DNA from: Penicillus capitatus
Lineage: Eukaryota > Plantae > Chlorophyta
Length of the DNA stretch: 64,000 bases
Direction of reading: 5' to 3'
Assembly: GCA_965649825.1 (NCBI GenBank)
Contig: OZ287701.1
Coordinates: 1,381,539 to 1,445,538, forward strand
Part shown: piece by piece, positions 5,851 through 54,080 of the stretch
Position numbering within the stretch: position 1 is the first letter of the stretch
How the letters are laid out: every line of letters starts with the position of its first letter
Translations under genes and position numbers: made by a program
Notes under the pieces: generated by a model
Databases searched by the model: none
Seen by the model: only the letters and a program-made list of their open reading frames with translations
What the model was told of the DNA's origin: nothing

Positions 5851-5896
5851 GTTGCTGGTCTGACGAATCGTGAACGGTTGAACGAGGAATGCCGAC

Positions 5897-5935
5897 TTAT
5901 ATACGACTGTCGAGCATTCAGGAACTCTCTCGAAT
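5897..5935 (-). promoter_or_regulatory. Heat shock element plus TATA box upstream of HSP20
   Basis: 5916-5935 reads aTTCa-gGAAc-tCTCt-cGAAt: four alternating nGAAn units with one mismatch. TATATAA lies on the minus strand at 5897-5903, between the HSE and the HSP20 ATG. Confidence 0.8.
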
Positions 5936-6137
5936 CTTGGCGCATGTTCATGATGACGTGGATGTGACCGTCGCGTCGAAAAGACGTTGCATCCATGAAA
6001 CGCGCCGCTCCGTCGCCACTGACGTGGCACCGAACAGCGTCATTCGATCGTCGAGAACTTCGATAACATAAGACGCCACAATTAACATTGTCTGAAGATA
6101 ATAACGAACGGGTGTTGCACAAGGGCGAGGGTACACC

Positions 6138-9490: not shown

Positions 9491-9808
9491 GTCACTGACT
9501 GGAGCAAGGACACGCTGTTGACTCCGTTGCTCTGCAACGAACGGGATTGCAGATAGGATGCACATCGCTTAGACACTAGTCGTGGCATTTGTCAGGCTAT
9601 TCCTGCAAAAACTCTGTTACCATACACACTTACTGGAAGATATTGTAATATTTCATTCGCGTAGCGAATTGAGCGTGTATTCTTAGTATGGGAACAATCT
9701 CAGTGGAGAATGGATGATAGGAGAGACATATTTGTGACCTGTCATGTGTTTGGAATGTAGACAACGGTATTGAGTGTTGGTACGTGCAGATGAGACATCG
9801 TGCGTTCG

Positions 9809-11475
9809 ATGCTCTTGCGTTTCGTCCGTGCCCTGCGGCCAGCCATTTCGTCGGAGAGCACTCTCAAGATCCGTCTGCGCCACCACTGTCGTATGGCATC
9901 GACCATTCCAAGTGCTCAGAGTGACGAAGTGCGTCCTTGTAGATGCTCCCCTCAGTGATCAACCACTGCCACAGGTCCTCGTGGAGAAGAGAGGCTCTCT
10001 CGTCATCTCCACCCTCAACAGGCATGCCACCCACGATCGATGAGCAAAGAGACGGACGGTCGTGCGATGCATTTAGGCCGCGTGCACTCAATGCTCTGAA
10101 CACCCCGATGGTGTGCACGACGATTGATGCCGTCTTCTTTGACGATCTCTTTCTTCAGATCATTCGACTGTTGGAGCATCTCAAGGAGTGGAATGCCAAT
10201 GAGGGTGACGTCGGAGCGGTGGTTGTCCAAGGGGCAGGAGGCAAAGTGCGTGTTCTCTAATCTATTGTGTCATGACGGATGCGTGTGTGATTGTGACATG
10301 TGTCAGGCGTTCTGTGCTGGAGGAGATGTCAAGCATGTTGTTCAGAGCGAGAGGGTCGAGGAACGGATCGAGTTCTTCAACCATGAGTACCGCATGAACT
10401 ACGCTGTGGCCAAATTCCGCAAGCCGTTGATCTGCCTCATGGATGGAATCGTGATGGGCGGCGGATGCGGCATTGCCATGCACGCGTCTTTCAGAATCGC
10501 CACCGAGAGGTAGGTGTTTGGGACACAGCAACGCCTACCTGTCACATCATTTCTGTCGCAGAACGGTCTGTGCCATGCCAGAATGCGTCATCGGTTTTGT
10601 ACCGGACATCGGATCTTCCTATTTTCTCAACAGATTGCCGGACACCATCGGAGTATATATGGCGCTAACTGGGAAGAGAATCCGAGGTCAAGATTCGGAT
10701 CTTCATCTGTTATGCCTTCTTCAGTATGGAAGCAGGTCTGGAACTCAAAGCTGTGGGATTGGCAACGCACTATATCGCATCGGACCAGATGCCGACCGTC
10801 CTGCAGCATCTGACGGACATGGGAACGACAGTGCGCGATCACAGTGCCGTGAATACAATGCTGAACAAACTAGAAGTGCGCCGCCGCCTCTGTCCCGTGC
10901 CTTTTCGTGATACGCTGGTCGGCGATGTCGTTTCAGGTGCATGGTCACTTAAAAGAGATGCCGTCTCTCTTCGGCCCCCTTTCGCGCATGGGATCCATGT
11001 TTAATCCTTTTGAGTTTTCGCTCGAAGCGCTGATGGCGAGATTGGCATCGGCAGACGACGAGCCTTCTAAAGAGGCGCTCGAAAACATAAACAGGTCTGT
11101 TCTTTTTCCTCGAGATGGACGACGGTATGCGTGCCTTGTACAGTGGCGCACCTCTGTCTGTGTCTCTGGCATATGAGCTGATGAAACGCATGGCAGGACA
11201 ACCGCTGAAGACGTGTTTGCAAACAGAGATGACATTGGCTGCCAATCTGTCAAGAGGCGAGGGCGAGTTCTTTGAAGGAGTGCGTGCGTTGCTCATCGAC
11301 AAAGACAAGACGCCGAAATGGAAGTACCATAGATCACAGGTCCGTCCATAACGACAAGACATCTGCACAGACTAACAACGAGGCTGCCTCTTAGATCACT
11401 CCAGAACTGATCGATCGATTCTTTCAGTCAAGAGAAGGGGATCCTTTACTCTTTGACCCCATCGCAAAACTTTAG
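9809..11475 (+). CDS. HIBCH: 3-hydroxyisobutyryl-CoA hydrolase (crotonase fold; CHY1/HIBCH-like)
   Basis: TLNRPRALNALN, AFCAGGDV, MDGIVMGGGCG, AMPECVIGFVPDIGSSYFLNRL, EFFEGVRALLIDKDKTPKW; last exon ends DPIAKL-TAG (11473-11475). Confidence 0.92.
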
Positions 11476-11617
11476 TGTGATGGTGTCTTTTCTCGGAGAT
11501 CTTTTGCTCAAGTGCTGTCGGCTTTGTCAGGGGTCTTGTCATCGAGAGCGCCACATATAAAGCGTGGGAGATTGGTGATTTTCTCAATGTCGACAGCCGA
11601 GAGCGTCATTCGATGCG

Positions 11618-12723
11618 ATGTTACTTCAAAACAAACTGATCGTGTGCTCCCTCACAGCGAACAACCGAACGGTAACACAAATCGGCGCATGTATTCCACG
11701 TCCCCCCTTCGACGCGGTGCTAATTCTCAACCGTCGATGCCAACGGCTTCATTCACGCCTGTTTTCTTTGCAGCGTCCGTCCGAGGTATCAACATCGAGA
11801 CGGTCCATCCTGACAGCCCTCCCGATCATCGCCTTGCCATCTCTGTGGTCATTTGGACAGCCATCTGTCTCGCATGCGGACACAAAGAAGCAGCTATCGA
11901 GTGAATTCATTGCTGCTTTCAACAAGGCCTTGAGCCAAACGGACGATCCCGCTAAGGCAGACCGGTCCTGGACGGATGTGATCCAACTCGATCCGACAAA
12001 CTCTTATGCCTGGAGCAATCGTGGGACCATCCGTCTACAGCAAGTTTGTCCGTCCTCTTCCTCGATATATATACGGACTAGGCTACAGGGGGAGTGGAAA
12101 GGGGCCAAAGAAGATTTGCTCAAGGCTTACGAACTCGAGACAGCAGACGGCAAAGCGAGTGGCATTTTGCTGAACAATCTAGGCAATGTGTATGGCGCAT
12201 TGGATGACTGGGAGACGGCGATAGAGAAGTTCAGAGCGGCATCACTGGAGCCAGCGATGACGCCCATTGCTTTGGGAAATCTCGCCTTTGCTCTCTTCCA
12301 GGCATCGAAAACCTATTGCCCTTCGGATGCCATCCTCTTTTTGTGCAGTTGGAGAGGACAGACGAGGCAATTCGTCAAGCCAAGGCACTTCTGAGAAAGG
12401 ATCCAAACTTCCTCGACATGCGAGCGGCGCTCACAGGATTTCTGTGGTCGATTGGCGAGGAGGGAGAGGCAGAATCTCAATGGTCGCAGCTGCAGGCGGC
12501 AAACGATGGACTTGGAGGTATGTCTACGCCCCACGATGTATCAAGCGCATTGCTGAATGGCGCAGGCGAGATCTATAAGAAGGAGGTAGCGATAGAGAGA
12601 GTGCAGGGAAGGTGGCCGCCTCGTGCTGTCGCTGCCTTGGACGCTTTCCTGAAGGTATCGCGTCAAGGGGAATCTCTGGACTATGATCAAACCAAGAAGA
12701 CATTTTCATTCACCTTGTCTTAA
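11618..12723 (+). CDS. Plastid-type TPR protein (cyanobacterial-like, RWPP motif)
   Basis: Transit-like N-terminus with RR plus hydrophobic stretch and A-x-A-like site; TPR motifs (AWSNRGTIRLQQ, LLNNLGNVYGAL, LLRKDPNFLDMRAAL); C-terminal GRWPPRAVAALDAFL. Confidence 0.8.
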
Positions 12724-29215: not shown

Positions 29216-30973
29216 ATGATGCGTGGAGAATCCTCGGCGCAAACAGCAGCGCCACTACTCCCAATGGCTGGTGGCGATCCTAGAAAGTTGCTAGAAGGAA
29301 ACGGTCGTTACGTCAGAGTGGGAAGTGTTAACTGTTGTGGCTGGCTGTGGCGTGCCGTTTTCCGTAACTGGGGTCGCACGGTGCGCAGCACACCAACGGA
29401 GACGTTTTTTCCAGTCACGAAAGTCGGAGTGCAGAATATCGTTCGCTGGGCCAAAGCAAATGGAAAAAGGGTAAGGGCTGCTGGATACCGACACACATGG
29501 AGTAGTTTTTACGTCGATGACGGCCAAGTGTTTATTTCCATGCTGCCACCCAAGGTCGCCGAGAAAATACCGACGCCTCCCTATCCGTATGATCCAGACA
29601 GAGAACTCGGCCGCATTGAAGAGTTGTCGACCGAAAGAGTCGGAAACAAAACTTACCGTCTCATCAAAGTGGGAACCGCCACGACAAATGAGCAACTCCG
29701 TGTGTGGCTGCTGAAAGAAAAGAATTGGACCATTCCACTAAATGTCATTATGTCTGCCATCACCCTAGGAGGAAGCAATGCACCGATATGTCATGGATCT
29801 GGCTGGGAAACCAAGACCCTCAGCGATTTGGTAACGGAGCTTGAGTATGTGAATGCAAATGGGGATCTGGTGACGGTCAATGATAAGACGTTACTCAGGA
29901 GTGCTGCTGGCTGTTTTGGATTACTGGGCATCGTGGTGTCGCTAACGTTACGCCTGGATACCATGTCTTGCGCAAGAATGCAGCCACGCGCCAGACCAGT
30001 CGTTTTGTCCATCCCTCCGCCTCGTGGATACTGGGTACCGCGTAACGTCGATCTGCGTGGAGTCACGCCAGCCCAGAAGGAAGAAGCATTTCGAGCTATG
30101 GTCGAGAGTTTTGAGAAAAAGTACTACAATGAGTATTTTTGGTTTCCTCTTCAACGTGAATGCTGGATCAACTGTTGGGAGAATGATGGCAACGTGAACA
30201 ATGCCGAGATTTATCCGACGAATTGCGAAAGCATGATGGAAGCATTCTTCCAAGCCGTTCTCAATTTTGCCAACATAAAGATCTTCCGATGGTTGCTGCC
30301 AGTCATATCGACTTCAATCATTGGCTGGGGTGCCATGAAGAACCTTACTCAGAGACAAGACTACGTTGTGTGGCTTCCCGATGCTCTGCACTTCGTCAGA
30401 GGCATTCAGAATCTGCGCTGCTTAGATATGGAATGGGAGATACCGATACCCAGCTTACCAGATGATGAGACCAAGCCCGATTGGTCTATTGTACAAAAGT
30501 GCTGGTGGGATGTCATCACATCCGTGTACTCCAGATACAACAGCTCCAGTAAAGACATGCCATTGCGTCTCGCTCTTGAGCTGCGTGTCACGGGTGATTC
30601 TGACATCATCATGGCTCCTCAACACGGAAACAAACTCGGAACCTTAGCCATCGAGATTCTATCATTCAGCACTGTCGGAAGTGAAGTCTGGTTGAGCTTC
30701 ATGCAGGAGATCACGGATAAATGGAGCAAGTATACAGATGCAAAAGGCATACCCTTGAAGATTCGTCCGCATTGGGCTAAGGAATGGGAAAACCTGACTG
30801 TCAGGGGAGAACCTATCGTGGATTACTTGAAATCTGTGTATGCCGATCAGATTAAGATCTTCAAGCAAGATCTCGAAGACATTGGAAGTAAACAGGGCGT
30901 TTCATTGGAACAGACGAGGTCGATGTTTTCGAACAAACTCCTCGATGAGCTGATCTTCGATACAGCTGCTTAG
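29216..30973 (+). CDS. FAD-linked oxidoreductase (PCMH FAD-binding + ALO-type C-terminal domain), intronless
   Basis: 585-aa ORF; RVRAAGYRHTWS FAD-binding His motif, ITLGGSNAPICHGSG, LSDLVTELEYVNANG, AAGCFGLLGIVVSLTL, LALELRVTG, terminal RPHWAKEW. Confidence 0.88.
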   Translation: MMRGESSAQTAAPLLPMAGGDPRKLLEGNGRYVRVGSVNCCGWLWRAVFRNWGRTVRSTPTETFFPVTKVGVQNIVRWAKANGKRVRAAGYRHTWSSFYVDDGQVFISMLPPKVAEKIPTPPYPYDPDRELGRIEELSTERVGNKTYRLIKVGTATTNEQLRVWLLKEKNWTIPLNVIMSAITLGGSNAPICHGSGWETKTLSDLVTELEYVNANGDLVTVNDKTLLRSAAGCFGLLGIVVSLTLRLDTMSCARMQPRARPVVLSIPPPRGYWVPRNVDLRGVTPAQKEEAFRAMVESFEKKYYNEYFWFPLQRECWINCWENDGNVNNAEIYPTNCESMMEAFFQAVLNFANIKIFRWLLPVISTSIIGWGAMKNLTQRQDYVVWLPDALHFVRGIQNLRCLDMEWEIPIPSLPDDETKPDWSIVQKCWWDVITSVYSRYNSSSKDMPLRLALELRVTGDSDIIMAPQHGNKLGTLAIEILSFSTVGSEVWLSFMQEITDKWSKYTDAKGIPLKIRPHWAKEWENLTVRGEPIVDYLKSVYADQIKIFKQDLEDIGSKQGVSLEQTRSMFSNKLLDELIFDTAA

Positions 30974-31532
30974 AATTCTAGCTACCACTTGTGTGAGTTC
31001 AGGGCCCTCCCTGGCTCTTTTTTATTGCCTAACGCTCTCAAACACTCAAACTGCCAACACGTTATTAAGCACGCCGAGACAATGGATCGGCCGAACACAT
31101 ACTTTTCGATTTCTTTGCTGGATTTGTGGGAACTAAAACGAGCTTCATCAGAATTCTCATCCGTTGCTAGACGCAGACGAGCAAGAACTGAGTGTCATCA
31201 TGTAACGATGTGGAACATCGGAGTGACAAGAACTCTCCAATGACGATGATCGATACTGGTAGAAAAGTATCTATGGTCGATGGTTTACATGACGCTTAGA
31301 TCCTTCATAGGCAGGGCAGCTGGAAAGCTTCATGCAGAGATAATGACGTCGGGATCTGGGCAATAGATCCACAGACGTGCCGTGTTTTGGGAAGCAACAG
31401 AGCTTGATATCTCGTGATGCGGAGGCGCCGATGTTCATAAGACACGTTGGGTGTTTCCTCGACAAGGAACTCGTTTAACACGTTTCTCCTTGTCCAATCT
31501 GTATAATTGACAAAAGAGGAAAAAATAAAGAG

Positions 31533-32882
31533 CTAAAAAGATCCGTTTGGGACGACTGTCGCCAAATCGGACTTCACTGCCACATTGGTTGCACTTACAT
31601 TTGGTTCTTCTGTCACCGGGACCTGGAAATCCAGCTCGACTCCCTTTTCGAAGACCAGGCAGTGTGTCGAACCGCCGAAATGGAACATTCCAAGTTCATC
31701 GCCCTTTTTAACCTCTTGACCTTCCACGACTGTAATCTCGCAACTCGATACTTCTCCCATTCCCACCAAAACAATTGCAATTAAACCAACTGCAGGATTG
31801 TCTGCACGAATAAAAATAATCCCCCGTGTTGCCACGGATGTCATAAATGGCTGAAATTCATTTGGTGCTGCTGGATGCGGATTTTCGCTGTGAATGCTCT
31901 CCGATGGACTTTGAAGATAGAAAGCTCCATCAACGATAGAGGTTTTCTCAATTGCCCCGTCCACTGGACTGTGCCAGCAGTGGTAAGTCAGAGCACTCAA
32001 AAATGCTTGATATACTGTACCGCCAGCAAATTGAACAGCAAGGGGATCGTTGTTAAGCATGGCCTCCAGTGAATACGGTTGGCCCTTTAGCGTAATATCA
32101 GCAGAGAGCATAACACCTTTCTTGTACTGCAGAGGAGCCGATTCACAAACATTGACGATGTCTGCACCGCCGACTGGCCGCTGGCCTTCTCTGAACCTCC
32201 TCGTAAAGAAGGCATCCCAACTTTTGAAACCCAGATACTTTTCATCAGTCACATCTGGCACTTCGAAGATTTCTTCAAATGATAATCTGCGTTTATCAAC
32301 GAACGGCAGTAATGCCACCTCGACCATCTGCTGTTTGACAGGCACACTGAACCATGGGACAGATCGCACAGCACCAGAATCATCGCCTTCGGCAAATACG
32401 TATCTCGATTCCTCCCTGGACAAAAATCCACTCCAATACTGCAAGACATTCTTGAAGCATCGGTTGAACTCAACGTTTGCAAGAGTGTCGTAACCAGACG
32501 GTGTTCTCATGGGCCAGTCAAGCAACGCATTGATTGGAAACCCGACTAGACCGTATGTCTCATCATCTTCTGCATTCACGATGAACTCCGGAGCAATGGT
32601 CATAATAAAGTTCAGCAAATCCAAGAATTCTTTCCACGTTTCGACCGCTGGCGTCGAGGTCGAATCTGCGTCACTGTAGTGCAGGGCTTCGACGAACATG
32701 CCTTGTGTCGAAATGTCCAACAGCGGATTATTGGCGACCATATTGTACAGCTCTCGCACCGGTTTGTGATATTCGGACACTTCGGTGACTGTAACCCTAT
32801 CCTTGAATCCTGAAACCCATTTCTCCAGTAATACATGCTTTTCCAGCCAGTTTCGCTGTCTTCTTTTGGATAGTCGCAACAT
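31533..32882 (-). CDS. Phosphatidylserine decarboxylase-family protein of the PsiD-like type (N-terminal PSDC domain), intronless
   Basis: 449-aa ORF; GLVGFPINALLDWPM, FKSWDAFFTRRFR, NVCESAP, LKGQPYSL, GGTVYQAFLSALTYHCWHSPVDG, VGMGEVSSC, VKKGDELGMFHFGGSTHCLVF with GG|ST pyruvoyl self-cleavage site. Confidence 0.9.
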   Translation of the reverse strand: MLRLSKRRQRNWLEKHVLLEKWVSGFKDRVTVTEVSEYHKPVRELYNMVANNPLLDISTQGMFVEALHYSDADSTSTPAVETWKEFLDLLNFIMTIAPEFIVNAEDDETYGLVGFPINALLDWPMRTPSGYDTLANVEFNRCFKNVLQYWSGFLSREESRYVFAEGDDSGAVRSVPWFSVPVKQQMVEVALLPFVDKRRLSFEEIFEVPDVTDEKYLGFKSWDAFFTRRFREGQRPVGGADIVNVCESAPLQYKKGVMLSADITLKGQPYSLEAMLNNDPLAVQFAGGTVYQAFLSALTYHCWHSPVDGAIEKTSIVDGAFYLQSPSESIHSENPHPAAPNEFQPFMTSVATRGIIFIRADNPAVGLIAIVLVGMGEVSSCEITVVEGQEVKKGDELGMFHFGGSTHCLVFEKGVELDFQVPVTEEPNVSATNVAVKSDLATVVPNGSF

Positions 32883-34934
32883 GGAGACGTCAAAAGCTTC
32901 TTAGAGGCTGAAGAGAGGGCCAGACTTAAAAACGTGCACCAATGGCGGTATGACCGCCGTTCGCAACGGCGGAGCGAACGTTCGTACAAAGGCCGCCCGC
33001 CAGACGGTTCTATTTCCTGCCCGATGTGACTAGACCTTCGTCAGAATGTTTGGCTTGAGATGGTCAGATGTATAAAGGAGTCTGTTAAGTTGATTAATAA
33101 ATAAACAACAACTTTCTTTGCTTAATGCAAACTTTTTTACATTGAATGAAAGCTGGTTTGTTTTCTTATTTGAATAGACAATGACATACATGCACATGTG
33201 TGTGCGGAGTTCATGACTCATGCTCTCGTTATCTGCAGGAAAATGCGTACTGTTCTTGTGACGGATCGTCTCGAAACAATCTGTTCTGTTTGGCTGTTGC
33301 CCGCGTCAATCTCCATTCCTTCCTCTCTTATTCGATTCGCTTCTTCATCCGTTATAGAGTGCATGGAAAGAACTCGTCGATGCCGCAGGCTCTGTCCCTC
33401 GAGTCGTGGGATCCTTAACAACTTGTCACCAGATTTACTCTGTGCTTGTATTCGAGCGAAGGGACAGATCTGTTGCAGTCCTCTGCGACAGTCTCTGAAT
33501 TCTGAAGGATTTGCCATTCGGCATCAAATGTAGTCATGGCATAACTGGATGGAGATTCCAGCAACGTTATGATGAGGAGACATCCCATTGAAGTAGCAAA
33601 TGGAATGAAAAAGGGAAAAGGACGGCGAACCCTGCAGACGGAAGGCAGCAAAAATCTTCAAAGTGGGAGTTCATTGCAAAAAAGTATTCTATGTACCATA
33701 CATGTATGGGCCAGACCACTCTTGCATAACTTCAAGCAAGTCCTTGCGATTTCACTCTCTTGACGCCAAACGCGAAGGTCCACTAAAGTGGTGTTAATGT
33801 TGCATATGTTTCATTAGCGATGATAAGGTTGATGAACGTTTCCCTTGACAAAGACAGCTACGAATGTTCTCCTTTGCACAGATGTTGATGACGCTCTCGA
33901 TTTCGTGTTTAGAGTACAACAGATTACTGGCTACGTGATATCGGTTTTAGCGCTGTGAACGGATAGGAACAGTCGGCCACGAGTTCGAAGAACTTGGTTC
34001 TAATGCGTCTCCCAAGATGGCATTTTCCCGCTGTGCACCATACCGTGAGAAACAGAGAAGTGAACATTAGTCAACAACCAATGAGTGGACAATGAGTCGA
34101 AAACATGAAACGGAATGAAAAACGACTCACAAAGATCACTTCGTTGAATGTTTCCACATCATACACTTGCATGTAGATGACTGCTGTCAGTGGAGGAAAT
34201 CGTTGAGTGCCTGCCCATGAAAACGACTCGGTACGCTGCCTTCTTTTCCAATGGGTGGAAGAAGCAGATCAACACGAGCTCAGCCAACGCGTTCATGAGA
34301 GATTTCACATCAACAAACAGGCGGCTCCGCCTTTGACTTCCTGAGGAAGCCATTAAGCTTCGAGAAGACATCATTGAAATCGCCATTCAAACGAAGGACC
34401 GATGTTACAAATCATGCAGTCCAGACAGCATCGATGCATCGCACTTGGAGAAAGCGGGTGAGTCCTCTGCATCGGGCACGGCTATTGATGAGAGACTTTC
34501 CAGGGATATGGTGGACATGGAGGCTGTGGAGAGGAATGATGGTCGAATGAACAGCTGTCGTTCACTGCCACACGAAGACCTTCGGCGTTCCCTTCGCGTC
34601 TTCTTCCTCTCTCCTGTAGAGCATCGCAAAAAGGAAGTGACGCGAAGAGAACCTTGTTCGCTGCTCGCGTCAACGATTCTCAGACGGCAACCCTACTACG
34701 GTGCTGTCCTCGGCATGGAAGCTGTGCCACGTATCGAATGCGATTCACCAGACAATCATCGCTTCGTTTCGTCTCCATTCTTTTGTGTGGTGGACCAGCT
34801 GCGATCTATTAATTGCCGCGTCTAGGGGCATAAGCAGAACAGAACTCGGCACGTGGCAGCAAAGTTCCTTGTCATCTTCTACGCGCTTTGTTTTGTCTTG
34901 CGTGTCTTCGAATTTGCCGTCCGGTCTATGAAAC

Positions 34935-37900
34935 ATGTCACGACGGGCTGCAGATCTCTTCAAGTGCTTCGTCGTCGCACTCTGTCTTGTCGGCGCTCTG
35001 ACGCTGGTGGGAGAAGCTTCACAAGGTGAACATAAAAACCTCGCTCTGCTTGACGCAACGACGCTAAACACGCCAGAGCCCAGACGCGAAAGCGACATGT
35101 TCGATTCCTTGGCGCGTTTACACGAAAACGAGGGAGCTTCTTTTACGTGTTCGGTTTCCAGATGACGCTTGCAGTTTGCTGCAAGCGAAGGACAACGCAG
35201 CCGGTGGCATGGGGACGACGTGGCACGTCGACGATGCGTTCCTCGACAAACATGGTTTGCAAGACGCTATCAACTGTACTGGCGATGGAGATATCATTTT
35301 GATAAGCGCTTCTAGCACCGTGCAATCGCCGAAGCCACTCAACATTACAAAACGACTTACGATTCGACATGGCCAGTCAGACGAGGCAAGGACGGAGACA
35401 GAGGATGACACGAGAACGACGTTGACATGTCCTTCGAACGACAGGCTTTTGCTCATCGAGTGCGTATTCCACGCAAGGCATTACACAGCCAGCGGACTTG
35501 GCGTGTCTAGGAACGCGAACGTCGTCTTGGAAGATATTGTCATCCGAGACTGCTCGTTCTCTGAGGACGATTCGGTCGACAGCATCATCGACGTCAAGTG
35601 CGATGCATCCGCAGACGAAGCCTTTGTCTTCGAGATGTCGAACGTCGACTTCGTCAACAACAGCAATCCCGGTGGTTCTGTTGGATTCTCTGTCCAGAAC
35701 CGGGCTTGCGTCTCAGTATCGATGGACAGCGTCGTATTCAGCGGAAACACGTTTCTCCACGGCTCGTTGTTTGGCCAGAAGAACGAGCTCAGAGACATAG
35801 GCCTATTTGAGAACGCTCAGATCTGGTCAGGATCTGCGAATGGTGGTCAGGAGCCGGCCAACCAAGAAACCGTGAAACATCCAGAGGGTCGGAAGTGAGT
35901 TGAAAAGGTCGCCACTGGCGCTTCTAACGATCTGCTTCGTTTTTCAGGTACATGCAGAATTCACCTCGTTTTGCAGAGAATCCACTTCTCTACTCTCTTT
36001 TTCGTTTCCCCAAGTCATCGACGACGACATTGGTGAATGTCATGGCCGAGAAGAATAAAGGAGAACTGATATCCGTCGAAGAGGCAAGACTGACGATAAA
36101 GGGCAGATCGAGTTTTCGTCGCAACGTTCTCGACGCAGCAGAAGGCGCGACGATCATTGCCTACGAAAGCGCGGTCCACCTCAGTGGCGTTTCGTTCCAA
36201 TCCAACGAGTACAGAACGGGCTCAGCTTTTTCCTTACACCAAGGATCCAATGGGACACTGGACGGTGTGCGCTTCCTCGATAACACGATCGATTCGGGGT
36301 CTTGTGTTTCTGTCACTAATGTCGCAGAATTGCAGATACACCGCATCCGCCTTTGAGGAAAACAAGGTCACAGACGGTCCTGTCATTTTCGTCAATGGAA
36401 AATGCGATGAGCGAGATCCGCTTCTGAATATTTCCAATACCCGTTTTTCGAAAAACAAGGGGGGAGACTTTTCTTTGACCGCGCTGCGCGTTGGTATCCA
36501 ACTTCTGATTGCAGGATTCGACGGCGGACGCGTGTTATTGCATTCGACCACGTTTTCATTGAATGGAATTGGCTGGGATGCAGACCGCATCTCTTTGAGT
36601 TCGATTCGTACTTTTTCCGGCAGCGGGAGTTTTCTCATGACGTCAAGTGAACACGTGGATTTCGCGATGACGGACTGCACTTTTTTTGCTAACCGTGTTA
36701 TGCAGAGTCTGTCTGAGATGTACTTCGACCAATGCAATGGCGACTTCCTTATCTCAAAATCGAGATTCTCGTCGAATATCGGCGTCGGCAAAGGACGCGT
36801 GATTTACTTTCATGACTCCGCGGGAGAACGCAGCAATCTGAGCATCGCCGATTCCGTTTTTCAAAACAATTGCGGCGATTTGAACAATATTCACATTGAC
36901 GGGGCAAAGAGCGTCCGTGTGGAGCGCAGCAATTTCACTGAAAACTGTGCTCATCTTGAAGGCTTTGCTCTGTTTGTCGATAATGCGGATTCCTTTGAAG
37001 CGCATGATTGCCAGATATTGGACAACATTATACTGTTTGATAGGCTCTATGGTCCAATGCTACTTCTTTCTGCCAGAAGTGGCGCGTTTGTGCTTCACTC
37101 AGTCCGCACCGTTGTTCTTAAGGGATCTGTCTTCTACAACAACACTGGATTCGTCGGCAGTGCAGTGCGATATGAGCCACGAAGCGACAAGACCAAGATG
37201 CTGGTCGAATTCTGCACGTTCCAGAAGAACATTGGGGTCAACGGAGTATTCTATCTCCTTCGTGGCAGAGAAGTGAAGGTCCAGAATTCCTCGTTCATTG
37301 AGAACATTTCGTTTGAAAAGACCGGAACCGTGCACTTGGAGGACACCTATGTCATGCGCGTGCAATCTTGCACGTTCCAGAAGAACGAAGCGGAGACGGG
37401 GGGCGGATTGTCAGTCGGTGGTTACCATACCGCGGAGATTTCGAGTTCCGCTTTCCATAGGAACAAAGCCCATTCTTTCGGCGGCGCCGTATGCATAAAC
37501 AATGGTAAATCCAAAAGCCATGGAGCCAAGATAAGGAATACAACTTTCACTGAGAACACGGCATTCATTGGAGGGGCGATGAGCTCGAGCGAAACAAATA
37601 GTTTTCACCTTCACGAATGCTCCTTTGTCAGAAACAGTGCAACTCTATACGGAGGCGCTGTCGCATTACTGAAAATGCCAGGATGGACAACTTATCTTCC
37701 CTGGCACAAACTTGGTTTCTTGTCATTCGCGGAGAACAGCGCAGCCTATGGAGGTTAGAAGTCAGTTCCTGTCTGTCAACAGATGACAACAGCGTCTTGT
37801 TCTTTGCAGGGGCATTGTTCATGGACACTTCAAAAAGAACCGTTAAATCCGACGACAAGAACAATGTTGTGATGCCGAAAGATGCAGTGCGTAACGATCG

Positions 37901-40498
37901 AGCGCAATGGCGCGATGGAAACTTGACGTTCTCAGGAAATCATGCCGAGATAGCCGGCGGTGCAGTTTTTGCTCAATACCGTGATCACATCGAGCGTTTG
38001 AAGCTGAGATGCACTCCGCCTCTGAATGCGTCGTCTGGAGGAGTCGATTCGAAGATCTCTTTCTCACGCACAGCAGCATGCGAAGAAATGAAAGGCAACA
38101 CAGTGAAAGATGGCGGCTATGGACCAGACATCGCCACTCCTTCGACAGGATTCTTTGCCACGATACTCTTCGAAAACGGCAAAAACCATTCTCTGGCTGA
38201 AGGAGACAGCGGTGACTTTGGAGACTGGAAGAGTGGAAAAGAATTGCCCTTGCTGCAGGTCACGATGTACGACTCCTTTGGACAAGGGCTGGCCCGAACA
38301 CGGTCGCATATCGCGGAAGTCGTGACATTCTTGCCAGATCAAGATCCGATTACATCATACGGTTTTCCAGTTACAGCGCTCCTACACTCAGAAGACAAGC
38401 TGTTTCGAAATGATCTGGTATGTAACTTGAGAGACGGAAAGGATATTCTCGTGATGGGATCGCCACTTGTGAAGCCTGGAAAGTATTCTGCGAAGCTGGG
38501 AGCACATGATGTTTCAGATGGAGACATCACATTCACGGTCACCGCTCGCGAGTGTGTGATCAATGAATACCGACGAGACGACAACAAGGAGTGCATCGAG
38601 TGCGATCACAGGCACTACAACTTCAACCCTGTGGATGGAAGTTGTGCAAACTGTCCAGAGAATGCCAACTGCACGGGGATGTATGTACTTCCTGATCCTG
38701 GGAAGTGGAACTCCTTTCCGTGCTCGCATGAGATTCATCGCTGCCTGTATGAAGACGCTTGTCTTGGAATGAACTTAGAGACTTCCCCCGAGGAAGATCT
38801 GCATGTCGACGAAGAGAAGAAAGACACGTGCGACTTCTCAGATGAAGCGATCGAGAAGTATCGAAAGGCCATGTGCGATGATGGCTACGAAGGTGTTCTC
38901 TGTGGGGCTTGCAATGAGAACTACGCCAAGATCGGACTGAGCCGGTGTCGGAAATGCCAAAATCGTTTTCTGATAGTGCTCGGCATCGCGGCCACCATGG
39001 TTCTTCTGACGTATTCTTCCACAGAACAGATCAGCGGAAATCTGGACAACGTCAGATCGAGATGGGTAGGCCGGATGGAACGGCTTCGAACGATGCCGAC
39101 AGAAGCAGCCATCCTCGAGGTAATCGACCGAGCAGAGGCCGATCAGGAACACGTCGAAGTGGCACAGAAAGCGAAGGAGCGGTTTGTTCTTGTGCTTCAG
39201 GTAAGCACCAGTTCTCCTTCTGATTCTCATGGGTCGAGTCTTCGCTGCAGATCATGCTGAATTTCCTGCAGTCGATCTGTGCGGCGATGTCGATACACTT
39301 CGAATGGTCAACGTACATCGTTCAGCTGTTAACGACATGGAGTAAGAGCGAACACGCCCTTGCGAGTTGCTGACGCCTTTGGCTCTGTGCAGATTGGATC
39401 AGTGGCACCGTGTCCGAAGTATCCACGTTCTCGTTCGAGTGCCTGCTTCCTGCTCGTGGGTCGACTCCTGGATCTGTCATACGAACCGCCCTCACAGTGA
39501 TCGTCCCACTCTTTGTCACCGCCATCATCTGTTCTTTCTGGGCAATCAGGACTATCGGCCGACGCATGCCGTGGAAGTTCTTCGTCAAGAGATGCATCCT
39601 GACCGCCGTCTCCGTTCTGTACGTTTCCTATCTCTCTCTGGCCGAGACGGCCATTAACGTCTTCTACTGCATTGATGTCTTCGACGAAGTCACACTTCAT
39701 GGTATCAGCACTTCTCGTTCCTATTGGGTCGCGGACACGGCTGTCAGATGTTATGCTGGTAGCCACAGAGTCCTTGTCTACGTCGTTGCCGTCCCTCTTC
39801 TCGTATTCGTTCTTGCGTATCCACTTGTGTTGGCCGTCGTAATGGTGATCGCGAATAGAAGAGGAAACTTAAGAACCGACTGGATCCAGTCGACGCTCGG
39901 GGTGCTCATGAATGGCTTCAAGACCGAGTTTGCTTTTTGGGACTGCACCATTTTGCTCAGGAAGGCTTTGATTGCGACAGTCATCGTGTTCGCTTACAAA
40001 TTCGGTGTTGCGCTCCAGGGAAATCTGCTGTGTTGTATTTTTGTCTGCTCGATGTATCTGCACTTGGTTTTCCTTCCTTACCAAACAAACGCCGGACCGC
40101 TGAATTTCCTCGAAGGGCTCAGTCTCTTCGTCTGCGGGACGACGGTCATGTCGGGTGTCATTCTCACTGACCCTAACACGACATCGGAAATCGTTAATCT
40201 GTTTTTGGTGCTCTATGTGTTAGCGAGTAACCTGGTTGCCTTCTCGATCTTCGGTTTCCATCTTCTGACCAACAAGTACACTGAAATCAAGTACACTCTT
40301 CTTTGCGAGGGTGTTGACGTGGGCAGCGGCGACGTCGTTGTCGTTCTGAAGACTTATGTTCGACACAAAACAGAGAAAGTGCGAAACTTGAGCCGAAAGA
40401 TCACGGAGAAGATGTCTCCGTCCAGACGCAATATGGCGGCGGAAGCTGGAGGCTCGGAATCGACAAGGAGCTTGCTCCCCTGTGGCAGCACCAACTAG
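34935..40498 (+). CDS. Large membrane protein: signal peptide, PMP-like GGA/FxxN beta-helix, Cys-rich repeats, multi-TM C-terminus; one apparent +1 frameshift near 36345
   Basis: Signal MSRRAADLFKCFVVALCLVGALTL; repeats FQKNEAETGGGL, FHRNKAHSFGGAV, FTENTAFIGGAM; Cys-rich CIECDHRHY...CANCPENANC...CDDGYEGVLCGAC; several TM helices in ORF 39410..40498. All junctions splice in frame except 36345, where no intron fits. Confidence 0.82.
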
Positions 40499-41345
40499 AT
40501 TCAATGGTGTTCTCCTCCTGAAGCGGACCTATTTCATTGACGTTAAGAGCTTGGTGCTCAAAAGTTCCTGTCTGTCTTCCCGATTCGATTGCGATGAAGG
40601 TGTCGAGTGCGACAAGTCGTCGCCGGTTGATGTTCGAGTGACGATCTTCTGCTTTAATGAGACAGTATCCTGTGGGTTTGGAAATGCGAATGTCACATCG
40701 CGAGCGCACACGAGGTTTCCAAGTAGCCGTCACGTCTACAATAAAAGGTTTGCGAACACAAACGTCGCGTCGTGTTCAACTGGAACGGCAGAACTGCATG
40801 CACAGTTCTGCGTGTTCAGCATGCAGCAAAGCGTCATTCAGACACGCGACATGGACGTCGTCGATCCCACTTTAGATGACATCCGTGATCGGTTATTCGA
40901 CACATCTGGCCAAAAGTGGGGACAGTGTATCGCCAGAAGTGTACTTCTTTCGTCCATGCTCACGCGAACCGGCCCTTCTAGACAAGCAGCATTGGCTGAA
41001 GCGCAAGCGAGATAGACACTCCGCGTACGACAAGGGTGATGATACACAGGCGGCATGCATTTCTTCGCTGAATGATTCAGAATGATTCCTTCTCGACTGC
41101 TGCGGCGATGTAAACCGCGAGAGGAACTCAAGTGCCATCAGTGGGTAATCTCCATTCCGCGAGTTCTCCAGTTCTGCTGGCGTTGATCGAGGCGTGTTCG
41201 CAGTTTCGCCTCGTCGAGCGATGGGCATCGTCGGGGTTCGACGGTACCAGGCAAGATCCACACTGCCAGTACGGCGACTACTCTGTTGAGTCCCTCTAAT
41301 GCACCCTATATCACACGTTTACCAGGATGTCTGTCCGTGTAGGGT

Positions 41346-44917: not shown

Positions 44918-45548
44918 CTCGAAGGACTACGACTTCAGGTGGCGGCGTATAATGAGAGGCAGTTCATTGTTGCTTTGCCAGATGCGACGGATGAGAAAGC
45001 GACGATGGTGTCGACACCGGACGTCTTGGTCTCGTTCTCAACTCACTGCAAAGAACGCGTCAGTCGAGAGATCTGAGACAGACAAGCGATAAAGCACTGG
45101 ACAGCAGGATGGGCGCTTGGCCCGGCAAGGCGTCTTGAAATGTTAAACTGCCGCGACCGAGGGCGTTGACGCAGACTTGCTGCGTTCGCGCGAGATTTCT
45201 TTCTCCGAACGGACTGGAACGAACAGACCTGGCTCACGATAGCGGACTGCGCAAGGCAGCCTTGTCGATTGAACATCGGGAGTGTTTGTTTTAGAAATTC
45301 TGACATTGCAGTGAACGCAGCGACGCAGAATGCGATCTATTAGCGAGACGGGACATCTTTCGAAGAAAGAGACCTTCGGGGAGCGATGTGGCGACTTCTA
45401 CGAAGCTTTCTTAGTTTCCGAGATCGTCTTTTCGAAGGACGGATGTGACGCCGAAGATGGCGACGATTGAATAGACGTCTTCCATCGTCGTCAGTCATCC
45501 GTCTCATTCCTCTCGACGCCGCCACTCCGTTCGGCCTGAATCGACACC

Positions 45549-46291
45549 ATGCCGAGGATCCGCTACCACCGTCGACGTAATCTGTTTAGGAATTCTGCGC
45601 GGTGTCCTCTGCTGAGCCGTCTTCTCTCAGGCACCAAAGTATCAAAGCATCCACGTCGTCCATTTGAAAAGGAGAGGCTGGATGCCGAGCTGAAGTTGGT
45701 TGGCGAGCATGGATTGAAAAACAAGCGAGAGCTGTGGCGTGTCCAAGTGGCCTTGTCCAAGATCTGCAATGCTGCTCGGACACTGCTCATGTTGGAGGAG
45801 AATGATCCGAAGCGCATCTTTGATCGATGGTCGGTCAGACATTGATGAGACGCATGTATCAATCGCTATGGTCTTCTCCAAGAGGATCAGGTCAAACTCG
45901 ATTACGTGCTGGAATTGACTCCGAAGAATTTCCCGGAGAGACGTCTGCAGACGTTGGTCTCCAAACAAGGACTGGTGAAATCCATCCATCATGCACGTGT
46001 GTTGATCTTTCAGCGCCACATCCGGTAGGAATCGCGGCATCGATGATTTCTGCCGATGACGATCTGCGGTGTTGGGAAGCAGATTGTGAATAGACCATCC
46101 CTTGTTGTTCGCGTCGACAGCGAGAAGCACATCGATTTCTCCGTGACGAGTCCGTTTGATGGAAATCGCCCTGGCCGTGTGAAGAGGAGATCTGAAAAGT
46201 CTGTCTGTCCACAACTTCGATAAAGATGCATTCCATGTTGTTCAGATCGAAACAAGGAGGCGGCGATGGTGACGACTACGGCGATGATTAG
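45549..46291 (+). pseudogene. RPS9: 40S ribosomal protein S9 (uS4) pseudogene with introns retained
   Basis: [32 protein letters not shown]...; three +4 insertions at 45821-45865 give TGA TGA in frame; LDYVLEL...ERRLQTLV...[16 protein letters not shown]; acceptor reads ctgcgg where ctgcag is expected; [23 protein letters not shown]. Confidence 0.93.
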
Positions 46292-46407: not shown

Positions 46408-47531
46408 CTACGCAAAACGCTGGATGTCAAGAGCGACATCCCTGAGCGATGGCATCTCGTCCATTGTCTTCACAACTTCCAACTGATCGAACTGTTGTCT
46501 GTCTCTCTTCAGCACCTGCCAGGGTTCAGGATAGCATCGAAACAATGCCCCTGATCAGCAACACAAGTTTCAGGTGATACCCTTTCTTCGGAAAGGAATG
46601 GACCTGGATACGACCCCTTGAAGTTGTGAATGTAGTAAACCTGGGTGAAGTTTGGAATGAAGCTCTTCGAAATGCGACCGATCTTTGGATAGAGCAAAGA
46701 AGGATAGTATCCAGTCCGAATGCGATCCAGTTCGCCGTTGAACACGATGATCGGGCGTCTGTTCTCCGACATGGATGTCCACAGCTCTTCGACGTAGAGA
46801 ATCTCTGTGCAATCCGCTGTTATCGGCGCGAAGTATCTGGGAAGGCAATGTGCCTACCGTCCACGTTGAAGTGTGGGTAGGCTATCACAAATATCTCATC
46901 GGTCTCTTTGATTTTCTCGCTTATCGGTTTCTTGTTTATGTCGATTCCGATGTCCATCAAAATCGTCGGCTTCATCAAGAAATCCAGCTGAAATCGCGAA
47001 GTCTCAAAGACGGGTGTGAGCTGTGCACTGCCCGCAGCAGGATCCATGGCTCTCCCTTGGATTGCCGTTCTGAGCTCCTACATGTCACTGCTATGACACT
47101 GTTTTATAGTCTGCAGCTGTTTCACAGATTCCTCTGGAAAGAAAATCCTTGTGGCTTCTGCCTTTCCCAAAATTTCGAAGATTCTGCTGTAGCGACGCAG
47201 ATAGTTCATACTGAAGTTCATTTCGTTTGCCCCGTCTGCATCTCCGGAAACGCTGGCAAGGCTGGCAGTCGGAAACTCGACCTCCATCAGTGTACACTCA
47301 TCGTCCATGGCCCGTTGTGTTGCCTCCTGTGCCTGTTGGATGGCCTCTTCGTATGTCCTCGGGAAAAGCTGAAGACGAAAGGCGTGCACAAGATCAACCA
47401 CTCATGCTGGTTACCGATAGAGGCTGTTTGGTAGATGCTGCACACTTCGCATGACATCCTTTTCGGACTGTTCTAGAACTCAGATCTGTCTGTCGCGAAC
47501 AAACGAGCGAAGGCCGCTCTATTACGAGCAT
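46408..47531 (-). CDS. DUF1995 family plastid protein, intact
   Basis: Transit-like N-terminus; FPRTYEEAIQQAQEAT...LMEVEFP, AYPHFNVDE, RPIIVFNGELDRIRTGYYP, GALFRCYPEPWQVL; introns join in frame; TAG at 46408-46410. Confidence 0.85.
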
Positions 47532-51620: not shown

Positions 51621-54080
51621 ATGTCTCGACGAAAACAAACCAAGCATCCAAATCGAATATTCGAAGAGGTTGAAGCCTCGACGTGTCGGAGAAGTCGACT
51701 GAAACACAAAACAGAATACGGTTCGCCGAATGAAACGCGAAGGGCCCGTAGAGCCAATCATGAAAGCAACACGAATGGGCATGGCAGTGATGCAAGTGTT
51801 CGGAAACGATCAAATCTGTCTGGAAGACTTACTTATAGATCAGGCGCATTTGAGAAGCAAGTGAGACAGATCGAAGCACGTTTCAAAGGGGAACGTCTGC
51901 AGAACGATACTGCAAGAACGACTACCGAGCATACAACGACCCCAAACGGGCCCAAATCTTCACGGCGGTCAATTGTAGGGAATGACAATTCTCATGAAAG
52001 ACCCAAATCTTCTCAGAAAGTGGATAACAGGAATGAAACCTATCCAAACGACAGTCACGAAGTCTTGGTGTTGATTCCGTCTAGAATGCATGAATCAATA
52101 AGCGGAGTCAGCGATTCTGGACCTGACCTGATGGGGAATGAAGTCAGCGATTCTGCATCCGATAACCCGACAGACAGCGGAGTCAACGACTCTGGCCCTG
52201 ACGTGATGGGGAATGGAGTCAGCGATTCTGCATCCGATAACCCGACAGACGGCGGAGTCAACGAGTCTGCATCCGATAACCCGACAGACGGCGGAGTCAG
52301 CGACTCTGCATCCGATAACCTGGCAGACAGCGGAGTCAGCGACTCTGGCCCTGACCTGATGGGGAATGAAGTCAGCGATTCTGCATCCGATAACCCGACA
52401 GACGGCGGAGTCAACGACTCTGGCCCTGACGTGATGGGGAATGGAGTCAGCGATTCTGCATCCGATAACCCGACAGACGGCGGAGTCAGCGATTCTGCAT
52501 CCGATAACCCGACAGACGGCGGAGTCAACGATTCTGCATCCGATAACCCGACAGACGGCGGAGTCAACGATTCTGCATCCGATAACCCGACAGACGGCGG
52601 AGTCAACGAGTCTGCATCCGATAACCCGACAGACGGCGGAGTCAACGATTCTGCATCCGATAACCCGACAGACGGCGGAGTCAACGAGTCTGCATCCGAT
52701 AACCCGACAGACGGCGGAGTCAGCGATTCTGCATCCGATAACTCTTTTGTTAGTATTACAGATCTCGTATCGGCAATGAACGAGTGTAGAAGCCCAGAGA
52801 AATTGGAGTTGTTGATAAAATGGGCATATAATTGGATGGAATATTTCTCTGCAGATAAACTTAATTCCTCCACGAAAAAAGAGCTCGGCGACTATTTTGC
52901 ATTTGCTGGCGTCAAGGCAGATGTTGATCATCCCTCGAAAGATGAATTTTCACTTACGTGGTTCAAAAAGATTGCCAAATATGTGACCACAGGCCAAATC
53001 AAGCAGGAGCCTATGCTCGAAGTTTTTGAACGTGCATTGTACCGAATCGATCATCGAGTGTTCGGTGGCAATCCAGCTTCCCTCATCCCTCTCATTCATT
53101 ATTGGATCCACAAAAAATTGTACGAGGAGAGCACTTGCTGGACAGAGGGAACGCATGCGACACATAGAATTATTCTGCGTTGTGCTCGTTCTGCGATGAT
53201 CGTTGCTGGCAAAGTTGAGCCCAAGTCGTGGGACCCAGTCGACGACAATAGTCCTTATCGGATGCTGCAAAAAGATCTTGAAAAATTAAAGCAGAGAGTG
53301 ATTTTCTACCCGACAGTCTTTGAGATTCAGCTGGTGGCAGAGACTATGAAGCAGCTGGTGATATCAGGATTCCAAACAGATTGGAAATTGTTTCTGCGCA
53401 AAACCCAAGCAGGAACGGCGGCATTGTTATGTGCAGTCAGCGTCGTCAAGAATGCCATCACTCTGAGCATTGATCCCGTCAATCTGAGGACTTGTGCGGA
53501 TTATCTCTCCGAAGCTGTCAGGCCAGTTTCCCAAAAGCCCGAAGACTGGTTCATCAGATATCAATCATTAAACGAAGCATACGTTCAGGTGCTCGAAGAC
53601 CCATCAAACTATGCAGTGTTCTTGGAGGAAATCAAGACAAGCACACAGAAAGAACGGAGATGGTACGGAATTTTCGGAAGTCGGTCTAGAGGCGAAAAGG
53701 CATTGGCGTGTGGGATCGTGGATTTGTTAAGTCAGTTGGCTGTCTACTCTGTTGACGATCAGGTCAGGGATAGCAGTGTAGCCGAACTGCGTCGTATGCA
53801 AGAAGATTGGCTTAAAGATAAAGACATTCTCCACCAAATGAGGCGAAGCTTTCGAGTCATTGCAGAGCAAGTGCGAAACGAGAGCTCCAAAAAAGCGCTT
53901 CCCTGGCCCAAGCAATGCCATCGTTTACATGCGTCGATCGATCCCCCTGACGTGGTCGGATCACAGGGCGTTGACAAAACTGTGGAACGTTGGCGTGATC
54001 GTTTTGCGAAGAACAGCTTCGTTAAGTGGATGGATACGTCCAATTCGCAAAGAACTCGGAATCGTTCACTAAGACAATGA
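51621..54080 (+). CDS. Intronless 819-aa protein: basic N-terminus, Asp/Ser tandem repeat, helical ARM-like C-terminal domain
   Basis: Long uninterrupted ORF with a non-repetitive helical C-terminal half (e.g. KALACGIVDLLSQLAVYSVDDQVRDSSVAELRRMQ); family not securely identified. Confidence 0.7.
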   Translation: MSRRKQTKHPNRIFEEVEASTCRRSRLKHKTEYGSPNETRRARRANHESNTNGHGSDASVRKRSNLSGRLTYRSGAFEKQVRQIEARFKGERLQNDTARTTTEHTTTPNGPKSSRRSIVGNDNSHERPKSSQKVDNRNETYPNDSHEVLVLIPSRMHESISGVSDSGPDLMGNEVSDSASDNPTDSGVNDSGPDVMGNGVSDSASDNPTDGGVNESASDNPTDGGVSDSASDNLADSGVSDSGPDLMGNEVSDSASDNPTDGGVNDSGPDVMGNGVSDSASDNPTDGGVSDSASDNPTDGGVNDSASDNPTDGGVNDSASDNPTDGGVNESASDNPTDGGVNDSASDNPTDGGVNESASDNPTDGGVSDSASDNSFVSITDLVSAMNECRSPEKLELLIKWAYNWMEYFSADKLNSSTKKELGDYFAFAGVKADVDHPSKDEFSLTWFKKIAKYVTTGQIKQEPMLEVFERALYRIDHRVFGGNPASLIPLIHYWIHKKLYEESTCWTEGTHATHRIILRCARSAMIVAGKVEPKSWDPVDDNSPYRMLQKDLEKLKQRVIFYPTVFEIQLVAETMKQLVISGFQTDWKLFLRKTQAGTAALLCAVSVVKNAITLSIDPVNLRTCADYLSEAVRPVSQKPEDWFIRYQSLNEAYVQVLEDPSNYAVFLEEIKTSTQKERRWYGIFGSRSRGEKALACGIVDLLSQLAVYSVDDQVRDSSVAELRRMQEDWLKDKDILHQMRRSFRVIAEQVRNESSKKALPWPKQCHRLHASIDPPDVVGSQGVDKTVERWRDRFAKNSFVKWMDTSNSQRTRNRSLRQ
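52110..52742 (+). repeat. Coding minisatellite of two unit types (39 nt and 36 nt)
   Basis: 12 full plus 1 partial copies of [SN][DE]SASDNPTDGGV and 4 copies of [SN]DSGPD[LV]MGN[EG]V; 12x39+4x36+21 = 633 nt. Confidence 0.95.

Follow-up and report, generated by a model that had tools for sequence, protein, structure and literature searches.

Convergent intronless genes for a putative pyruvoyl-dependent decarboxylase and a putative FAD-linked oxidase in the green alga Penicillus capitatus: a probable juxtaposition of separately acquired genes

Do two enzyme genes that lie close together in an algal genome, and whose families are found mainly in bacteria, represent a pathway that was acquired as a unit, or have they come to stand side by side independently? 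This question is raised by a locus of the green alga Penicillus capitatus, located in a stretch of 64,000 nucleotides (contig OZ287701.1, positions 1,381,539 to 1,445,538), which we refer to as the window and to which all coordinates apply. Here, the open reading frame (ORF) of a flavin adenine dinucleotide (FAD) oxidase (29216..30973, + strand; 1758 bp, 585 amino acids) and that of a PSDC+PSD-type decarboxylase (31533..32882, − strand; 1350 bp, 449 amino acids; paralogue A) converge tail-to-tail, both uninterrupted in the ORF call. An initial annotation had proposed that they form a laterally acquired module, in which an aromatic amino acid is decarboxylated and the product is oxidized to an amine-derived metabolite or alkaloid. 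The gene structures given there are exact, with 559 bp between the stop codons (30974..31532), a spacer that holds both facing 3′ ends. The interpretation of the pair has to be revised, however: we consider it probable that two separately acquired, long-resident genes of bacterial type were juxtaposed in this lineage, and that they do not constitute a two-gene pathway that was transferred or conserved as such. The juxtaposition most likely arose by chance or is lineage-specific, and a functional pairing is without support beyond the adjacency and co-occurrence of the two genes.

The decarboxylase contains the domains PF12588 (PSDC, 110 bits, residues 39-183) and PF02666 (PS_Dcarbxylase, 127 bits, residues 223-426), which both score far above the gathering score, and, judging from its sequence, belongs to the PSDC+PSD (Ao-ADC1/PsiD) family of pyruvoyl-dependent amino-acid decarboxylases. 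The self-cleavage motif G403-G404-S405-T406 (31665..31676, − strand) aligns with G401-G402-S403 of PsiD and with the GGST motif of Ao-ADC1; Ser405 is the predicted precursor of the pyruvoyl group, and the sequence FHFGGS is invariant in 18/18 aligned homologues. His301 (codon 31980..31982, − strand) is the equivalent of the catalytic and self-cleavage histidine of both enzymes (His296 in PsiD, His332 in Ao-ADC1), and together with Leu295 and Phe400 it corresponds to the PsiD residues His296, Leu290, and Phe398, whose roles have been described (PMC11929908). Self-cleavage of the proenzyme would accordingly take place between Gly404 and Ser405 and generate an N-terminal pyruvoyl group, which would form a Schiff base with the α-amino group of a free amino acid, followed by the release of CO2. 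A structural model of moderate quality (predicted local distance difference test, pLDDT, 71.6) resembles both Ao-ADC1 (PDB 9JER; target-normalised template modelling (TM) score 0.76) and PsiD (8X4Q/8ZIA; 0.77-0.79) with E ~3e-22; being equally close to the two enzymes, it does not discriminate between arginine and tryptophan. An identity as canonical phosphatidylserine decarboxylase can be rejected: the top NCBIfam PSD equivalog, with 88 bits, falls far short of its cut-off of 371, GGST stands in place of the LGST motif, and the E. coli enzyme matches at E ~5e-6 only, with TM scores of 0.53-0.60.

Which amino acid does the enzyme use? The initial annotation's assumption of an aromatic substrate is not borne out by the comparison with characterised enzymes. 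The closest of these is Ao-ADC1 from Aspergillus oryzae (E=5e-73, residues 10-405, 34% identity), a pyruvoyl-dependent arginine decarboxylase that has a GGST motif and lacks PSD activity (PMC12904898). Its structure 9JER bears the UniProt-style name “PsiD-like”, while the PDB title marks it as the arginine decarboxylase Ao-ADC1. PsiD, the L-tryptophan decarboxylase of Psilocybe cubensis, matches at E=4e-51, across residues 108-404 only and with 30-31% identity. At 11 positions that line the indole pocket of PsiD or anchor the pyruvoyl group, the window protein is identical to Ao-ADC1 in 8/11 and to PsiD in 4/11, the latter being the catalytic ones (F294, L295, H301, and M375). The indole-pocket residues of PsiD that were compared are L112, P114, Y117, F289, V292, Y338, L339, M373, T374, and I376. 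Thus, PsiD is similar in fold, in pyruvoyl chemistry, and in the equivalents of His296, Leu290, Phe398, and Gly402|Ser403, but differs from the window protein by L112V, P114F, Y117 (N118 in the window protein), V292A, the deletion of Y338, L339 (N341), T374 (G376), and I376V, as well as by a GGSS motif in place of GGST. With Ao-ADC1 (PDB 9JER, 9JF5, 9JFN), the window protein has in common the N-terminal helical PSDC domain and the PSD catalytic domain, the GGST motif, the catalytic histidine, and the motifs GFPxN..DWPM (loop 1) and YHCW. The fungal enzyme differs by having Asp in place of Asn341 and Ser in place of Gly376, and the loop-3 motif PDP..SQ, which is present in Ao-ADC1 and nearly all bacterial homologues, is altered in the window paralogue.

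Gene context in bacteria points in the same direction. Proteins with PF12588 and PF02666 that are annotated as “phosphatidylserine decarboxylase family proteins” (Amorphus, Rhodospirillaceae, Endozoicomonas, Aeromonas, Photobacterium, Flavobacterium) are 47-64% identical to the window protein over the full length, with identical pocket loops, and represent its evolutionary source group; unlike these uncharacterised bacterial proteins, the window gene is nuclear, duplicated, and host-like in composition. In four Endozoicomonas species (loci L011, L014, L015, L016), a 56%-identical homologue with pocket loops nearly identical to those of the window protein is the last gene of a same-strand cluster, following a CN_hydrolase (AguB-type), a PAD_porph protein (AguA/agmatine deiminase type), and an amino-acid permease. 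CN_hydrolase and agmatine deiminase together constitute a route from agmatine to putrescine, which needs a source of agmatine. This suggests that the Endozoicomonas proteins are pyruvoyl arginine decarboxylases that feed the agmatine deiminase pathway, and the aguB-aguA-permease context provides a testable function, arginine decarboxylation, for many bacterial proteins of this annotation. No agu genes are present in the window. In the other bacterial genera, clustering of 688 neighbour ORFs from 80 decarboxylase loci revealed only within-genus synteny, and no recurring Pfam theme was found near the gene in Aeromonas, Photobacterium, Flavobacterium, Methylovulum, or alphaproteobacteria, so that only Endozoicomonas is informative. 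With moderate confidence, and by analogy with these relatives, we take arginine decarboxylation to be the ancestral activity of the clade; the family ancestor would most likely have been an arginine decarboxylase yielding agmatine. As a separate observation, L049 and eight other Photobacterium loci have in common a class-I S-adenosylmethionine methyltransferase gene that precedes the decarboxylase by ~1 kb in the same orientation, with a small opposite-strand gene in between.

The subfamilies of both window genes had been linked to fungi and bacteria, which holds: the families are mainly bacterial, and their characterised members are fungal. How, then, did the decarboxylase reach the alga? In a neighbour-joining tree (127 sequences, 441 columns, 100 bootstraps), the window protein groups with that of L001, a contig of a related alga (bootstrap 100), and both group with L002 and L006 (bootstrap 100). 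These belong to an algal clade of 10 sequences, including two copies from Caulerpa and four from other eukaryote-type contigs (bootstrap 81). Its sister is a 25-member clade with Amorphus, a Rhodospirillaceae metagenome-assembled genome (MAG), and a bacterial scaffold of 61% guanine-plus-cytosine (GC) content (bootstrap 91), and the two clades together (bootstrap 98) lie inside cyanobacterial, gammaproteobacterial, and other bacterial sequences. Caulerpa provides the only named eukaryote matches, and the decarboxylases P0040 and P0024 are encoded on eukaryotic contigs beside fragmented NNT, PUF, LRR, and histone genes. Each algal copy that was examined consists of one ORF. The clade is nested in bacteria, patchy in eukaryotes, and linked to the eukaryotic genes RPS9 and LPA3, as is typical of a horizontally acquired gene. 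Lateral acquisition, as proposed initially, is thus upheld for the decarboxylase, but a discrete or recent acquisition is not supported, given orthologues in Caulerpa and another alga, host-like composition (GC 0.47, GC at third codon positions (GC3) 0.49, vs 61-66% GC in alphaproteobacterial loci), and duplications older than speciation. The ratio of non-synonymous to synonymous substitution rates (dN/dS) is 0.15 for the window vs L001 and 0.07 for L002 vs L006, with an overall range of 0.07-0.17, which indicates purifying selection, and the same comparison places the separation of the paralogue groups A and B before the species split. From these sequences, the decarboxylase appears to have passed from a bacterium to the alga long ago and to have been inherited vertically and duplicated since, rather than to belong to a recent island. 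An ancestor of part of the Bryopsidales would have taken up the gene from an alphaproteobacterium-like donor, with duplication afterwards; the pocket-loop changes of paralogue A would then have been fixed, and its current substrate may have shifted. PSD-like pyruvoyl amino-acid decarboxylases, of which only the fungal PsiD and Ao-ADC1 have been characterised so far, are hereby placed in the nuclear genomes of siphonous green algae, where they appear as an old bacterial acquisition that was duplicated and maintained by selection.

The oxidase matches PF01565 (FAD_binding_4, 38 bits) and PF04030 (ALO, 26.8 bits) above the gathering score, and its sequence assigns it to the VAO/PCMH-type FAD-linked oxidases, in an uncharacterised ALO-like family. 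It misses the curated subfamily cut-offs (TIGR01678, 44 vs 397; TIGR01679, 24 vs 292; DprE1, 17 vs 500), and a Pfam scan gave no match to the substrate-binding domain PF09129. His93 (codon 29492..29494, + strand), in the motif VRAAGYRHTWS, is the predicted site of covalent flavinylation, and 80 family members have it without exception. In alditol oxidase and type-II cholesterol oxidase, its counterpart in the alignment is the GSGH-S/MMH-NWS histidine, the position that bears the covalent FAD in these two enzymes, and the C-terminal RPHWAKEW fits the ALO signature (RPHWAK motif). The best folds retrieved with the structural model (pLDDT 87.7, predicted TM score 0.90) are L-galactono-1,4-lactone dehydrogenase, type-II cholesterol oxidase, alditol oxidase, and DprE1, with cytokinin oxidase ranking lower. 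According to this model, the nearest structural relatives all oxidise C-OH groups (of lactones, polyols, sterols, and a ribosyl lipid). These VAO-family oxidases and DprE1 (PDB 8QNB, 2VFR, 3JS8, 1I19, 4NCR) resemble the window protein in combining FAD_binding_4 with an ALO-type cap domain, in the flavinylation motif and RPHWAK, and in fold (target-normalised TM scores 0.64-0.79), but at 11-18% identity they are distant from it, and the window protein belongs to a separate family of ~660 amino acids. The oxidase is probably a flavoprotein oxidase or dehydrogenase that is covalently flavinylated at His93 and acts on an alcohol. Flavin oxidation of the amine produced by the decarboxylase, the second step of the proposed module, is not supported by this relationship to alcohol oxidases and dehydrogenases.

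The history of the oxidase appears to be separate from that of the decarboxylase. Its family is small, as 1.84 billion proteins yield only 211 representative clusters at E<=1e-30, and attracts attention as an uncharacterised group of flavoenzymes that is common to bacteria, bryopsidalean algae, and one diatom. The tree unites the window protein, P0122 and P0123 (both on eukaryotic contigs), and Caulerpa g7177 in an algal clade (bootstrap 100), to which a diatom sequence (Epithemia) and one further sequence are sister (bootstrap 77); deeper nodes are without support. With a diatom as sister, the signs of horizontal transfer are only partial for this gene. The phylogenetic test that had been suggested for both proteins therefore supports a bacterial origin for the decarboxylase and leaves it partial for the oxidase.

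Do the two genes occur together elsewhere? The oxidase does not occur within ±10 kb of the decarboxylase in 80 loci of named bacterial genomes, nor does the decarboxylase in 79 metagenomic loci of the oxidase (564 kb). Among algal loci, no pairing was found at the paralogue B loci L002 and L006, the decarboxylase locus L087 of a second alga, and the oxidase loci L004 and L088, and the Caulerpa gene models are not neighbours (oxidase g7177 vs decarboxylases g7343 and g6267). Co-occurrence of the genes, which had been named as a test of the module, is observed in three algal sources, but synteny is not (0/80, 0/79, and 0/5 informative algal loci). Neither gene has a conserved partner across genera in the 80 decarboxylase and 79 oxidase loci, and the named bacterial taxa that hold each family do not overlap. 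Since the genes are convergent, a shared promoter is impossible. The search of IMG/VR viral contigs returned no relative of either gene, and a viral vector is rejected on these grounds. In the literature, we found nothing relevant on PsiD-like enzymes in algae, on PSD-like enzymes in gene clusters, or on genes for caulerpin biosynthesis. The reading as a caulerpin-type alkaloid module is attractive, but unsupported and herewith corrected.

Several points weigh against two independent genes with an alcohol-type and an arginine-type ancestry. A distance of 559 bp is a priori unlikely for two specified genes, and both genes are found in the same three algal sources (the window organism, Caulerpa lentillifera, and the SRR3378504x organism). 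Neither gene gave a named match in Bryopsis or Ostreobium, whose proteomes are in the database according to the LPA3 matches, so that the two profiles coincide. The related-alga contig L001 ends 459 bp past the decarboxylase stop and counts neither for nor against the adjacency, and both trees are neighbour-joining only. The oxidase family is uncharacterised, which leaves room for amine oxidation. The assignment of arginine rests on a 34%-identical fungal enzyme and on the gene context in one bacterial genus. Moreover, of 142 sites with a conservation of 95% or more across 123 other members, paralogue A is changed at 15, and these include the pocket-loop changes S299T, R302C, Y321F, E324Q, D336H, S343F, and A376G. 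Nearly all of its substitutions are common to the orthologue in L001, and since the pocket-loop changes are fixed, the present substrate may differ from arginine.

These points lend some weight to the explanation that the two genes function as one biosynthetic unit: an (aromatic) amine made by the decarboxylase would be oxidised by the flavoenzyme towards an aldehyde, imine, or alkaloid, e.g., an indole metabolite. Next to the adjacency and the co-occurrence, such a unit could draw on the pocket loops of paralogue A, which under purifying selection have lost acids (E324Q, D336H) and gained aromatics (S343F, L163F, L178F), changes that are compatible with a shift away from arginine, and on the fact that some members of the VAO superfamily, such as the cytokinin oxidase among the lower fold matches, oxidise amines. 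We regard a unit of this kind as unlikely, however, as the adjacency recurs in none of ~165 other loci, searched from either gene, the phylogenetic neighbours differ (an alphaproteobacteria-type clade for the decarboxylase, a diatom for the oxidase), the orientation is convergent, PsiD indole-pocket positions are kept at 4/11, the best fold matches are all alcohol-oxidising, and a link between these genes and caulerpin was not found in the literature. A more specific version is a doubtful speculation: the substrate-shifted paralogue A (Asp336 and Glu324 lost, Phe343 gained) and the N-terminally shortened flavoenzyme beside it would together catalyse two steps, specific to this lineage, towards a specialised metabolite of siphonous green algae that derives from an amine and is possibly an indole or other aromatic compound, with the pair assembled de novo from two foreign genes. 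If the two genes indeed cooperate, they would be a metabolic gene pair that was assembled inside a eukaryote from separately acquired genes. Another explanation would be that the oxidase is a decaying or compromised remnant, which stands beside a functional decarboxylase by accident. The protein is without the N-terminal helical extension of ~80-100 amino acids that is typical of its ~660-amino-acid homologues. This domain is missing from the whole window, with an in-frame stop four codons upstream of the ATG, no result from tblastn with three algal homologues, and a best E of 4.7 when the 64 kb were searched in six frames with a hidden Markov model built from 73 N-terminal domains, so that an upstream exon is rejected. 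Two sites that are 100% conserved in 79 homologues carry unique changes, E181A and F295M. The former (Ala181, codon 29756..29758, + strand; NVIMVEIT to NVIMSAIT) is Glu in 79/79 aligned homologues and lies in residues 178-190, the only internal stretch of low confidence in the model, which appears disordered there. Furthermore, no oxidase orthologue of >62% identity was returned from the related-alga sample, whose decarboxylase orthologue is 86% identical. On the other hand, the frame of 585 codons is intact, 155/182 highly conserved positions are kept, the same as in the algal orthologues, His93 and RPHWAK are retained, and some natural family members (P0342, P0344, P0347, P0349) likewise begin directly with the catalytic core. 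The oxidase branch is also the slowest of the algal copies (mean outgroup distance 0.85 vs 0.94-1.00 for the algal orthologues), which argues against decay and leads us to reject pseudogenisation by branch length. A remnant is accordingly improbable as well.

A further rival is bacterial contamination or a chimeric join in the algal contig, which the initial annotation had named as refuting its proposal. It could be suspected from the low coverage (8x) of a second public contig of the same species (ENA ERZ25074695 ctg340143), from the bacterial-type block of 63% GC that this contig carries in place of window 1-11985, and from the mostly bacterial best matches of both genes. However, the two assemblies differ at only 39 places across window 21533-42886 (99.8% identity), all of which fall in 32.15-42.9 kb and none in 21.5-32.15 kb. 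Since two independent assemblies agree, the linkage of the pair is not an artefact. The decarboxylase accounts for five of the differences, and 5/5 are synonymous. In addition, L001, a 192x contig, is collinear with window 31.5-33.6 and 41.0-48.7 kb at ~80% nucleotide identity and carries the 86%-identical decarboxylase adjoining the same RPS9 and LPA3 genes; this synteny makes it very unlikely that the pair results from contamination or a chimeric join. GC and GC3 are host-like, Caulerpa and two further sources have orthologues on eukaryotic contigs, and the discordant junction with the 63% GC block is 17 kb distant. We consider the probability of an artefact at the pair minimal. What stands as probable is the juxtaposition of two separately acquired genes, for which we infer independent functions.

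The host is a bryopsidalean (siphonous) green alga, because the LPA3 neighbour has its top named matches, all Bryopsidales, in Bryopsis sp. KO-2023, Ostreobium quekettii, and Caulerpa lentillifera, with land-plant LPA3 ranking next; this agrees with the siphonous host that had been assumed. The conserved flanking genes are eukaryotic and split by introns: DUF1995/LPA3, with profile positions 1-72 and 86-159 encoded in the segments 47081-47401 and 46512-46853, ~230 bp apart, an RPS9 exon (45540-45842), ARM repeats, and an IQ motif. The contrast between the intronless pair and its split neighbours (LPA3, RPS9, etc.), on which the initial annotation had relied, is therefore real, but not exclusive to the pair. 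Five further uninterrupted ORFs of more than 500 amino acids are present in the window (7655-9490, 36157-37758, 37617-39260, 51621-54080, and 61858-63675). As an arithmetic estimate, an open frame of at least 449 codons is expected ~5e-5 times by chance in 64 kb at 50% GC.

The flanks of the pair are indeed free of recognisable genes over kilobases: no ORF of at least 130 amino acids is found in ~4.4 kb to the left (24.8-29.2 kb) or ~2.3 kb to the right (32.9-35.2 kb), and among the called genes of window 12-43 kb, no Pfam-recognisable gene besides the pair was found, except for one faint Kazal match. A repeat search of the flanks gave no direct repeats, and inverted repeats are limited to one weak pair of 23 nt, so that a mobile-element signature around the pair is rejected. 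Of the spacer, only about the first 60 bp past the decarboxylase stop are kept in L001. The 5′ flank of the decarboxylase (32883..33558, − strand) shows ~83% nucleotide identity with the orthologous locus (window 31471-33558 = L001 11411-9343), and is on this basis the presumed promoter and 5′ untranslated region of the gene. Beyond it, window 33558-40972 (7.4 kb) matches only 1.9 kb of the syntenic locus (L001 7476-9343) and is a lineage-specific insertion directly beside the pair. It contains ORFs of 240-547 amino acids at 35176-40498, none with a Pfam match, and is presumably the “defence-like island” of the initial annotation.

Other observations concern the assemblies and the remainder of the window. 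In comparison with L003, from the other assembly of the species, the zero-difference block gives way to the 39 differences around window 32154-32640, which suggests a haplotype-block boundary inside the decarboxylase gene. The public contig matches the window from position 11986 rightwards; left of it, the two diverge wholly, and the block of 63% GC (locus L086 12009-20675; genes TetR, FUR, MR_MLE, SDR, transketolase_N, CBS) replaces 1-11985, which has 51% GC. The junction lies inside a TPR-like ORF (11618-12394), and one of the two assemblies is chimeric or rearranged at this point. Locus L006 is derived from OZ245997.1, which is deposited as “MAG: Putridiphycobacter sp.”, “chromosome 1” of 6.9 Mb, and serves as a GTDB representative. 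Its ORF density is 0.21, vs 0.8-0.9 in real bacteria, its GC content is 50.5%, and it shows 81% nucleotide identity to the algal locus L002 as well as homology to window 43.1-44.4 kb. The record has the appearance of a nuclear contig from a bryopsidalean alga that was mislabelled as a Bacteroidota MAG.

Two of the long uninterrupted ORFs in the right part of the window have features of their own. The ORF at 51621-54080 (+ strand, 819 amino acids) has no Pfam family beyond a sub-threshold match and contains a tandem array at 52101-52742 with a period of 39 bp, ~15.6 copies, and a higher-order unit of 228 bp, which encodes SDSASDNPTDGGVN-type repeats. The ORF at 61858-63675 (+ strand, 605 amino acids) encodes right-handed beta-helix and Chlamydia-PMP-type repeats (PF13229, PF02415) and represents a further bacterial-flavoured intronless gene in the window.

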